In this document: positions 2,160 through 20,047 of the stretch, one piece after another
Position numbering within the stretch: the first letter of the stretch is position 1
Layout of the letters: each line of letters starts with the position of its first letter
Notes under the pieces: model-generated
Told to the model about the DNA's origin: nothing
Seen by the model: only the letters and a program-made list of their open reading frames with translations
Databases searched by the model: none
Made by a program: the position numbers and the translations under genes
Assembly: GCA_025603075.1 (NCBI GenBank)
Contig: MU626382.1
Coordinates: forward strand, 1 to 62,011
DNA length: 62,011 nt
Source of the DNA: Neoconidiobolus thromboides FSU 785
Lineage: Eukaryota; Fungi; Entomophthoromycota
Direction: 5' to 3'

Positions 2160-3109
<950 letters not shown>

Positions 3110-3206
3110 TTTAAATGCTAAATAAAATCAATTTATTATTTTAAACTTATAAAAAATTTAAATTAAATATACGTTTATTGATTTTAATAAATTTAATAGT
3201 TAAATA

Positions 3207-3836
3207 TTAAGCAGTAGAACCACCTCTAACATATTGGGTAAGAATTTTAGCGAAATTTTCACCTTGAGTACGAGCAATATCCAATTCTTTTTCAGATGCT
3301 TGTCTTGCCCCATTATTACCTGCAACTACAGAAGCACCATAAGGAGATCCACCGAGTACATCTTTATCTTCTTGAAGGTTAGGGTTAGCATAGCCAAGTG
3401 GAACATAAACAATACCAAAATGAGCAAAAGTAGTTAAAAAGGTAAGATGGGTAGTTTCTTGTCCACCATGCTGAGTATTGGAGGATACAAAAGTACCAGC
3501 AAATTTACCTTGTAAAGCACCAGTGGCCCATAAACCACCACAAGCATCCCAAAAGTGCTTAAATTGTGCTGGCATGATACCAAAACGAGTTGGAACACCA
3601 AACAAAAAGCCATCGGCTTCTTTTAGTTTTTCAGGAGTAAGTACTTCAATATCAGTTGGCTTAGCTGGGGCATGCATTTTTGTGAGTACTTCTTGTGGTA
3701 AAGTTTCGGGAATTTGATACAATGTTACTTCGACATTGGATACACGTTCGGCTCCTTCTTTAATAGCACGAGCTAAAGTAAGGATATGTTGATAAGTAGA
3801 GTAATATGGAATAAAAATTTTAGTTGGACGAGCCAT
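3207..3836 (-). CDS. Flavodoxin-like NAD(P)H:quinone oxidoreductase (WrbA/Pst2/Ycp4 family), copy 1
   Basis: Intronless, 209 aa. Motifs ADGFLFGVPTRFG, GGLWATGALQGKFAGTFVSS, QHGGQETT, GGSPYGA. Confidence 0.95.
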   Translation of the reverse strand: MARPTKIFIPYYSTYQHILTLARAIKEGAERVSNVEVTLYQIPETLPQEVLTKMHAPAKPTDIEVLTPEKLKEADGFLFGVPTRFGIMPAQFKHFWDACGGLWATGALQGKFAGTFVSSNTQHGGQETTHLTFLTTFAHFGIVYVPLGYANPNLQEDKDVLGGSPYGASVVAGNNGARQASEKELDIARTQGENFAKILTQYVRGGSTA

Positions 3837-17599: not shown

Positions 17600-18125
17600 A
17601 TATATATAAAGTATATGCAGTAAAATTGGACAATTGACATAAATATACGGTACACCGCTTGATGGGTCAAAGTTGATATTTAGATTTATAACTGAAGCTT
17701 TTAAATTAGCTGAACTGATTTTTAATCCAAAGATTTTATACTTATCTTTAAGTTAAAAGGCTTAAAAAATGAACAAAATATTTACTGAAAAAAGTAATTT
17801 TTATTTTAAATAGATCAAAATATAGCAGTAAATTAATAACAATGATTGACATTTTATTTAATTAATAGAAGATAAACTTTTCGATTATATTAAATTGCAA
17901 TTTTGAAACCATTTATAAAATATCCTTAGTTCCAATTCAAATTTAATATCATAACTTCGTCAAATATCAATCGGAATTAAATTTCAATCGAAAGATAGGA
18001 TTATAAGTTGACTAAATTTATCAATAAGATTTTTAATAACTAGAAAAACGCAACCGAAAATGAGGTTGGTTGGGTAGCAAAACAATATAAAAAGATCAAA
18101 AAAGCACATAAAGTAAACTATGTAA

Positions 18126-19092
18126 ATGAAAAAATCCAAGCGTTGTTGTAATCTTATAATTGGGAGTTTAATTGTCGTTTTGATAGCATTATGTGTTACA
18201 TGCTACCTGTTGACTGAAGAGGAACTAAAGATGAAACAATTAAGTTCGAAGATAGGGGCCGACTTTACATCAGAAGATACTGTTGATGGAATCAAAATTG
18301 AATTTCGAGTGATGAGTGTTGATTTAGCAAAAAACAAGTTGGAATCCCATCTTACTTTTATACCAAGCAATGGATTAACAACCAAATATAGTCGATTATC
18401 AAAAGATCTATTATTTAATTTCAATTATTACCAAAAGGAATTCAAAGCTAATTCTACTTTGTAATATTATTCTTTAATCTTTTAAAATGAATATTAAATT
18501 CTATATTTAGGAGTTCAATAGAGATAACGTATCCCATATTAGAAGGGAGTACTAGTTACTACCCATTTGATGAATTTTCCACCTTAGTTGAAGTTGAAAT
18601 TATCAACCTTGAAGACCAAACGGCAGTACCAATCGAATTAGATCTCAAAGCGAGTATAGCTTCATTAAAATTTTCATTTAATCCAATAGATGATGGTAAT
18701 CAACATCAAAAAGTTATATTAAATATAGGACGTCCAGGTACGGTTGTGTTTTTTTCACTATTTCTTTTTATCGTTATGTGGACTTTATCGCTGGCTGTTT
18801 TTATGTTAGCTTTATGGACTGTTGCTTTTTCAGAAGAAAGACCTGGAGCTAGCTACCTTGGTTTAGGTTCTGCTCTATTATTTGCTTTGCCTAATCTTAG
18901 ATCTACTCAACCTGGTGTTCCCCCTATTGGTGCCCTCTTAGATACTATTGGTTTCTTTTGGTAATTATATATATATACTCGTAGGATTATTTATTAATGT
19001 TTTTGTATAGGAATATGGTTCTAGTAGCTGTATCCTCTTCTATTATGATTGGAGTTTGGATACATCGTTTCAATCATTCTTCATCTAGTTAA
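18126..19092 (+). CDS. DUF4436-like multi-pass membrane protein, 3 exons
   Basis: Exons 18126-18460, 18511-18960, 19011-19092 (two 50-nt introns) give 288 aa: N-terminal TM, beta-rich domain with YYPFD, then three TM segments with LFALPNLRSTQPGVPPIGALLDTIGFFWNM. Family assignment is from recalled motifs. Confidence 0.8.
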
Positions 19093-20047
19093 ACGCATTT
19101 GTTTTTTATACTTACATTCATATAAATGCAATTTTATTATGTTGGGCTTCGTTTTATTACACTTTTAAATTTAAATCCTTATAGCACTTTAAGGAATTTT
19201 AATAAATTATTGTAACTGACGAAGTTAGGATATTTTTTATTTATTTTAATTCAAAGTATTCTATCCACCCTTGAATGACTTTATAAATGGACAAGTAATT
19301 CAAATAAAAAAGTTTTATTTTTAGTATAAATATTGACATAATATTATTATAAGCAAAGTAATATTTATTTTTGAATTTAAAAACAGTAAGTTAATCTGGT
19401 AAATTACTTGTTTATTTCAAATTCGCTTTTACAGTTATTATAGCCTTTTTGCGACATAGTTAACTACTCATTCAAGAAAAAAAAGCTAGAGTATTTGTAG
19501 AGTATATGGATCAGACTTTAAAAGATTATCTTAAAATTCAATCACAAAAACTAACGTTAAAAAAGTTATAAAAAAGTTGGAGCAGCTGTAAGAACGTAAA
19601 AAACATTTTTAAATACTAAAAAGGCTACTTAACTATAATAAATGAACTCACCCCCTAATATCAATAAATAACACTTTATATTTTATATTTTGTATTTTAA
19701 TTTACTAATAGAAAGTCGATTTCATAAACCATTAAAAGAATAATGACTTATTTTAACATCACTAAAAATATCAAAATGCTAAATAGTGAAATTATACATA
19801 ATCATAAAATAAGGGTATTATGAATTAATATTAATATTAGTATTAATACAATTCTTTACGGTAATTTCATTATTTAATTTGATTCAACAGACCAGGTTTT
19901 AAAGATAATTAAAACACAGACATAAAATAATATGGGTATCATAAAATAATCAAACTCCTTTTTTAAAAAGTAAGGGTAGATTGAATTGTATACTCCTGAA
20001 ACCTAATAAATTTCTAAACGTTGTAAATATAAATATAAAGATAGAAG

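Follow-up and report, generated by a model that had tools for sequence, protein, structure and literature searches.

The gene at 18126-19092 on the forward strand of the window, i.e., the whole stretch of 62,011 nucleotides that was analysed, is located in a contig of 26% G+C of Neoconidiobolus thromboides FSU 785 and encodes a DUF4436 protein with a predicted fold of the pLGIC (pentameric ligand-gated ion channel) type, which may act as a channel by the mechanism outlined below (probability of roughly 55% for channel function, mechanism included). Shared fold and ancestry with pLGICs, taken alone, are regarded as highly probable. Similarity to pLGICs is present at the level of family profiles and of predicted folds; oligomeric state, pore, gating, stimulus, and an M4-like role of the first membrane helix are features that we infer only by analogy with canonical channels. 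An earlier note on this DNA had proposed a channel-like protein of possible bacterial ancestry, of which the link to the pLGIC subunit fold was recovered with profiles and AlphaFold2 models, whereas a descent of this particular gene from bacteria found no support.

Few receptors have been studied as thoroughly as the pentameric ligand-gated channels. That they are reportedly missing from fungi and land plants is a fixture of evolutionary accounts, and the statement in the earlier note that they are generally considered absent from fungi agrees with the report of Jaiteh et al. 2016 (PMC4795631). The Pfam family DUF4436 (PF14494) is uncharacterised, and the copies that were consulted give it neither a function nor a structure; in the searched literature, it was encountered only as the label of a differentially expressed A. 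flavus gene, and neither an experimental datum on any DUF4436 protein nor a paper linking the family to pLGICs was found there. If DUF4436, a family both fungal and bacterial, combines coupling-interface residues that were kept with membrane helices that were rearranged, the range of the superfamily would be extended, DUF4436 would gain a testable function, the family would provide a natural experiment on the roles of M4 and of the M1 proline in gating, and an unexplored class of environmental sensors would be indicated for fungi, an insect-pathogen lineage among them.

The main open reading frame starts with the ATG at 18126, immediately preceded by an in-frame TAA (18123-18125), and the product of 288 aa is composed of three in-frame pieces (111, 149, and 26 residues) and two split codons. 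The gene model comprises the following parts:
18126..18460, + strand: exon 1 (codons 1-111 plus 2 nt), encoding the predicted cytosolic N-terminus, TM1, the linker, and the first ectodomain strands, based on the ORF and its translation
18461..18510, + strand: intron 1, 50 nt, GT..AG, phase 2, spliced out in contigs of three public runs and used in the same way by the public protein P0001
18511..18960, + strand: exon 2, encoding the remaining ectodomain, the Pro-loop, the pre-TM2 Arg, TM2, TM3, the conserved loop, and the first part of TM4
18961..19010, + strand: intron 2, 50 nt, GT..AG, phase 2, with its joint in contigs of runs X1, X3, and X5
19011..19092, + strand: exon 3, 26 codons, encoding the rest of TM4 and a short, presumably cytosolic tail, with the stop codon TAA at 19090-19092

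Splicing was assessed on contigs of public runs from two studies, which together cover at least 18095-19224, one of them beginning at 18095 and thus 5' of the ATG. Runs X1, X2, and X5 have contigs with the joint of intron 1 (18460^18511), and runs X1, X3, and X5 have contigs with that of intron 2 (18959/60^19010/11). Hence, the gene is real, and it is transcribed and spliced as modelled. The public protein at this locus, KAI9293541.1 (P0001; 227 aa; window positions 18231-18964), starts at Met36, uses the same intron 1, reads into the unrecognised intron 2, and stops, and therefore lacks the first and the last membrane helices. The Entomophthora homologue P0004 extends beyond the conserved F-x-W, and the helix located there matches exon 3. 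Many relatives in the databases also terminate at the conserved F-x-W, which suggests that a short last exon was missed there too.

Additional features were observed in the transcripts. A minimal upstream ORF (ATG-TAA, 18120-18125) abuts the main ATG within the transcribed region. Runs X1, X3, and X5 contain two transcript versions over 18129-19092, one of which is identical to the window and the other of which differs at about 4-8% of the positions, mostly by transitions (10-22 differences per contig); this divergent version could represent another allele, nucleus type, or strain. Within 18447-18981, record 12 of run X3 is unspliced across intron 1, and a contig of run X2 extends 21 nt into intron 2, which could be due to intron retention or to DNA in the libraries.

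The translated product was divided into the following features (+ strand throughout, residue numbers of the 288-aa protein):
18150..18212, + strand: TM1, residues 9-29, mean hydropathy 2.55, with four Lys/Arg in residues 1-8; a presumed signal anchor of N-in type and a candidate for the equivalent of M4
18291..18730 (intron 1 within), + strand: predicted beta-sandwich ectodomain, residues ~56-185, with nine modelled strands in the AlphaFold2 model of P0001
18560..18571, + strand: YPFD, residues 129-132, putative equivalent of the Pro-loop/Cys-loop, between modelled strands five and six
18731..18733, + strand: Arg186 in LNIGRP, putative equivalent of the pre-M1 Arg, after the last strand and immediately before TM2
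18737..18826, + strand: TM2, residues 188-217, M1-like, with a conserved Trp and without a conserved Pro
18848..18901, + strand: TM3, residues 225-242, M2-like, the least hydrophobic of the four helices, with FALPxLR at its end
18908..18943, + strand: QPGVPPIGALLD, residues 245-256, TM3-TM4 loop and putative equivalent of the M2-M3 loop, based on conservation and hhalign
18935..19074 (intron 2 within), + strand: TM4, residues 254-283, M3-like, with the helix start seen in the P0001 model

All parts described in the earlier note, namely the N-terminal TM helix, the beta-rich domain with YYPFD (residues 128-132), the Arg in LNIGRP, three further helices, and the loop between the second and third of these, were present as stated there. 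The N-terminal helix is common to most full-length relatives, bacterial ones included, and appears as a long helix in the model of P0004; about 26 residues of low-confidence linker separate it from the ectodomain. In the P0004 model, a full helix equivalent to TM4 (H289-323) is aligned to the M3 of pLGICs. The mean hydropathy of TM3 is 0.98 vs. ~2.5 for TM1 and TM2, which is compatible with a buried or pore-lining position of this helix.

Membership in DUF4436 was determined by searches against Pfam, in which exon 2 matched PF14494 with 74.6 bits (E 1e-20; gathering threshold 23.2 bits) and exon 1 weakly (E 0.006), and a six-frame scan of the genome gave 78.6 bits at this locus; the family assignment of the earlier note can thus be adopted. 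An exhaustive HMMER search of representative sequences with exon 2 returned 864 relatives at E ≤ 1e-3, all 83 of the relatives that were aligned match PF14494, a feature search of the ESM Atlas yielded DUF4436 clusters only, and a scan of DUF4436 proteins with NCBIfam gave nothing meaningful. In most full-length members, the N-terminal TM helix is followed by YPFD, then by a strongly and by a weakly hydrophobic helix, the QPGxPxxG loop, and a last helix. Named fungal relatives belong to Entomophthora muscae, Dispira, Tieghemiomyces, Blastocladiella, Sorochytrium, Siphonaria, and a MAG of the Lobulomycetales; the fungal spread comprises Entomophthoromycotina, Kickxellomycotina, Chytridiomycota, and Blastocladiomycota; a Basidiomycota cluster of the Atlas as well as the A. 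flavus gene label serve as pointers to Dikarya. The named algal relative is that of the green alga Edaphochlamys, and bacterial members were found in MAGs of Acidobacteriota, Verrucomicrobiota, and Actinomycetota, where they are located in ordinary bacterial gene neighbourhoods.

The relationship to pLGICs was visible in sequence comparisons to the family profile only. With exon 2 alone, phmmer returned no match among PDB sequences at E ≤ 10. When a profile built from the 83 DUF4436 members was searched with hmmsearch against 177,635 PDB sequences, pLGICs ranked first, the best matches being the octopus chemotactile receptors 8eis (E 0.0011) and 9e6b (E 0.0013), with a nAChR beta subunit at E 3.7; in the alignment, the YPFD of the family coincides with that of the receptors, its conserved Arg is matched to the pre-M1 Arg, and the match continues into M1. 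The same profile was then compared via hhalign with 13 canonical pLGICs from acidobacterial genomes (13/13 matching PF02931 and 12/13 PF02932), which gave an E-value of 8.5e-5 at 60% probability for an alignment of 152 columns that begins at the Pro-loop and ends in M3. In this alignment, the first Pro of the QP motif is paired with the M2-M3 Pro, and the invariant Asp is opposite that of 'LTRxD' in the bacterial pLGICs. The signal was lost in controls in which one of the alignments was reversed (P 0.09-0.26). A Pfam scan of the 83 members gave no match to PF02931 or PF02932 at E ≤ 10; what it returned besides was faint noise of the TM type (e.g., DUF4131 and DUF2207_C). In the N. thromboides genome, PF02931 had no match, and neither did it have one in the control genomes, which makes this weak evidence of absence, while the sole match to PF02932 (32587-32856 of contig C191, reverse strand; E 0.057, 17 bits) was below the threshold. 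One MAG of the Blastocatellia carries a DUF4436 gene together with a canonical pLGIC (L016 and L052; PF02931 E 4.4e-15), and since both occur in one acidobacterial genome, DUF4436 and the canonical pLGICs are considered separate families. The sample of 301 Acidobacteriota genomes included 16 with canonical pLGICs.

The highest conservation within DUF4436 is clustered at the predicted junction of ectodomain and membrane, i.e., in the YPFD loop, at Arg186, and at the TM3 end together with the TM3-TM4 loop (FALPxLR..QPGxPPIG...D). At this junction, pLGICs couple ligand binding to the opening of the pore, and they do so by largely the same residues. Conservation in the 83 DUF4436 members was compared with the pLGIC values in Table 1 of Jaiteh et al. 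2016 (PMC4795631). The Pro-loop of DUF4436 consists of Y (95%) or F (5%), P (100%), F (87%), and D (94%) or E (4%), vs. F 71% or Y 25%, P 100%, and D 93% in pLGICs; the Arg preceding TM2 (Arg186) is conserved at 98% and the pre-M1 Arg of pLGICs at 94%; and the Pro of QPG in the TM3-TM4 loop is conserved at 99% and the Pro of the M2-M3 loop at 88%. The 14' proline of M1, present in 77% of pLGICs, has no conserved counterpart among the 83 members, in which no column of TM2 holds a conserved Pro and a Trp (94%) is the conserved residue instead. Also among the most conserved pLGIC positions is the beta9 aromatic (PMC4795631). At the end of TM3, FALPxLR is conserved with F 99%, A 90%, P 96%, and R 100%, and in the QPGVPPIGALLD loop, P 99%, P 99%, G 100%, and D 100% were obtained; R242, G252, and D256 (numbering of this protein) are invariant residues around the interface that are the family's own. 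As the motifs are conserved at 94-100% in 83 members, the layout is no chance pattern of a single sequence. The correspondences that the earlier note had proposed, of YPFD to the Pro/Cys-loop, of Arg186 to the pre-M1 Arg, and of the loop with Pro...Asp to that between M2 and M3, were retrieved in the profile alignments as well as in those of the predicted structures.

Structures were predicted with AlphaFold2 using the family alignment for P0001, which corresponds to residues 36-262 of the window's protein (pLDDT 92.6, pTM 0.84), and for the full-length Entomophthora homologue P0004 (42% identical; pLDDT 86.5, pTM 0.79). Because many pLGIC structures were part of the AlphaFold2 training set, the independence of the models from these structures is incomplete. 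Both models show nine strands, with the YPFD loop between strands five and six and the Arg after the last strand, followed by the helices. In Foldseek searches against the PDB, pLGICs accounted for 50 of 50 among the matches listed, for P0001 and P0004 alike, with at least 500 chains at E ≤ 1e-3, best E-values of 3.9e-8 and 2.9e-7 for the two models, TM-scores of 0.3-0.49, and an rmsd of ~8-9 Å. An exhaustive VIA search, which does not depend on Foldseek, with P0001 against 48,161 PDB representatives placed pLGICs on all of ranks 1-23, including ZAC (8wge_A; Z 9.3, 195 aa, 5.0 Å), ELIC (Z 8.3), sTeLIC (Z 8.2), DeCLIC (Z 8.0), and GLIC (Z 7.9); the first other fold, at rank 24, was a helical hairpin of 75 aa. 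Across the structural searches with both models, GABA-A receptors were matched at Z 8.5-9.5. Structures consisting of the ectodomain only were matched by P0001 as well (nAChR alpha1 2qc1_B, Z 7.3 over 121 aa; GLIC 3igq, Z 6.3; AChBP 4afg, Z 6.2). For P0004, pLGICs were the sole matches that spanned both domains (205-225 residues, with model residues 54-324 on beta1 through M3). In the ESM Atlas, the nearest clusters after those of DUF4436 were Neur_chan clusters (TM 0.54-0.61), derived from arthropods, chordates, archaea, and bacteria. The global superposition is loose (rmsd 5-9 Å), and Z-scores of 8-9.5 are moderately above background. The Foldseek comparison of a predicted structure, which the earlier note had named as a check, thus pointed to pLGICs over both domains and not to an unrelated fold.

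Like DUF4436 proteins, the prokaryotic pLGICs (GLIC, ELIC, sTeLIC, and DeCLIC; PF02931 plus PF02932) are devoid of Cys-loop cysteines and of a large cytoplasmic domain, and both have the beta-sandwich (predicted in the case of DUF4436), the [F/Y]PxD Pro-loop, the pre-M1 Arg, M1-M2-M3, and the Pro of the M2-M3 loop; the Asp at the start of M3 is shared by DUF4436 and the aligned acidobacterial pLGICs. In contrast to the prokaryotic channels, DUF4436 lacks the C-terminal M4 and has a TM helix at the N-terminus instead, so that three helices rather than four follow the ectodomain; it is also without the conserved M1 proline and remains undetected by the Neur_chan models of Pfam. Its ectodomain is shorter (~130 aa of strands vs. 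~200 in pLGICs), whereas FALPxLRNxQPGxPPIG...D, which comprises the TM3 end and the loop, is far more conserved than its counterpart in prokaryotic pLGICs. The best profile and structural matches are animal Cys-loop receptors (nAChR, GABA-A, GlyR, GluCl, ZAC, and the cephalopod chemotactile receptors), with the YPFD of the octopus receptor loop being identical to that of DUF4436. Compared with these receptors, with which sequence identity is 7-16%, DUF4436 has neither the flanking cysteine pair nor the N-terminal alpha-helix, the M3-M4 intracellular domain, or an M4 after M3.

From these correspondences, a mechanism can be proposed. The N-terminus would be cytosolic, TM1 would cross the membrane from inside to outside and be connected via a flexible linker of ~26 aa to an extracellular beta-sandwich, and TM2-TM3-TM4, the presumed counterparts of M1-M2-M3, would be followed by a short cytosolic tail. 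By analogy with pLGICs, several subunits (probably five) would form a ring with the weakly hydrophobic TM3 lining the central pore; the ectodomain would sense a stimulus, which would be relayed via the cluster of Pro-loop, Arg, and TM3-TM4 loop and open the pore. TM1 would be situated at the lipid-facing rim, i.e., at the site occupied by M4 in canonical channels. Its predicted direction, from inside to outside as in M4, is deduced from the presence of four Lys/Arg among residues 1-8 together with the basic loop that resembles M1-M2 in the family, and the low-confidence linker of 26 residues could reach the top of the ectodomain; in analogy to M4, direction and reach together make a circular permutation plausible. 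A more far-reaching version, whose odds we place somewhat below even, would have DUF4436 as an ancient, circularly permuted branch of Pro-loop receptors (M4-like helix, ectodomain, and M1-M3) that act as working stimulus-gated channels in fungi and many soil bacteria, with the ~17 genes of N. thromboides able to build homo- or heteromeric receptors.

A protein with the pLGIC fold and ancestry need not conduct ions, and DUF4436 could be a membrane sensor, receptor, or scaffold, or its Arg/Asp/Pro cluster could bind a lipid or cell-wall precursor or act on it as a catalyst, in each case without a conducting pore. The strongest conservation falls on a compact cluster at the outer membrane interface, with two residues each of Arg and Asp, which would equally suit a binding site; no M4 occupies the usual position, the proline of M1 is lacking, and the Glu that 60% of the members have at the cytosolic end of TM3 is not found in the window's protein. 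A prediction of a three-copy complex of P0004, which was run without an alignment and without controls, gave a score of 0.02, which yields neither support for an oligomer nor an argument against one. We nevertheless consider such a non-conducting role unlikely, as the conserved residues are those that all pLGICs maintain for the coupling to gating, TM3 is, for a helix that faces lipid, too polar or too rich in small residues, and the structural matches include no fold of an enzyme or transporter.

The resemblance could also be due to convergence or artefact, i.e., to a generic beta-sandwich with a helical bundle, a chance occurrence of YPFD and Arg, and a bias of AlphaFold2 toward the well-represented pLGIC fold. 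Z-scores of 8-9.5 are barely above the common range, TM-scores to PDB chains stay below 0.5, and the E-values from sequence comparison are marginal (1e-3 and 8.5e-5), with Pfam models showing no link. Yet two methods that use the sequence only arrived at pLGICs independently and in the register of the structural alignment, one of them among 177,635 sequences, and the signal is gone in the reversed controls. No other family matches both domains, ectodomain-only structures are matched too, TM-scores of 0.54-0.61 were reached with the Neur_chan cluster models of the ESM Atlas, and the conserved residues equal the pLGIC signature position by position, which leaves such a coincidence quite improbable. 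A DUF4436 protein with pLGIC-type fold that functions as a channel is thus retained as the preferred reading.

As to origin, which is compatible with any of these functional readings, a recent import from bacteria into the Entomophthorales with later gain of introns appears very doubtful. A quick tree with unlabelled metagenomic rows among its input placed the clade of the window's protein, which it forms with five Entomophthora proteins (support 99), beside a clade containing bacteria, with weak support (SH-aLRT 88), and apart from the other N. thromboides paralogues. This proximity to bacteria was set aside for a careful tree restricted to labelled rows, in which, unrooted and with bacterial rows that represent a narrow sample of close relatives of one query, 17 eukaryotic and 29 bacterial rows were split by a single branch (support 100/99). 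All 17 eukaryotic rows, the clade of the window's protein included, were on one side of this branch. Moreover, the family occurs across early-diverging fungal phyla, and given this wide distribution, a recent bacterial origin is not supported, and neither is a gene-specific form of the possible bacterial ancestry put forward in the earlier note.

In the genome of N. thromboides (24.6 Mb), 17 matches to PF14494 exceed the threshold, with several arranged in tandem, and the clade of the gene described here is separate from the intronless paralogues L003, L006, and L007. Clusters of paralogues comprise four copies within 15 kb of contig C46 (11.8-26.6 kb), two on C116, a divergent pair on C175 (20.0-23.0 kb), and a pair on C121 (8.5-10.8 kb); an additional partial DUF4436 ORF accompanies paralogue L007 at 3071-3664. 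Two near-identical tandem DUF4436 units, with terminal branches of 0.13 and 0.03, make up part of P0006 of Edaphochlamys debaryana (771 aa), and P0005 of Siphonaria (631 aa), P0017 (513 aa), and P0094 (870 aa) likewise match over two stretches. Some of the E. muscae proteins of the family (P0004 and P0153) are labelled “F-box only protein 9” in NCBI and UniRef, which looks like an annotation error because DUF4436 is the only domain that Pfam finds in P0004.
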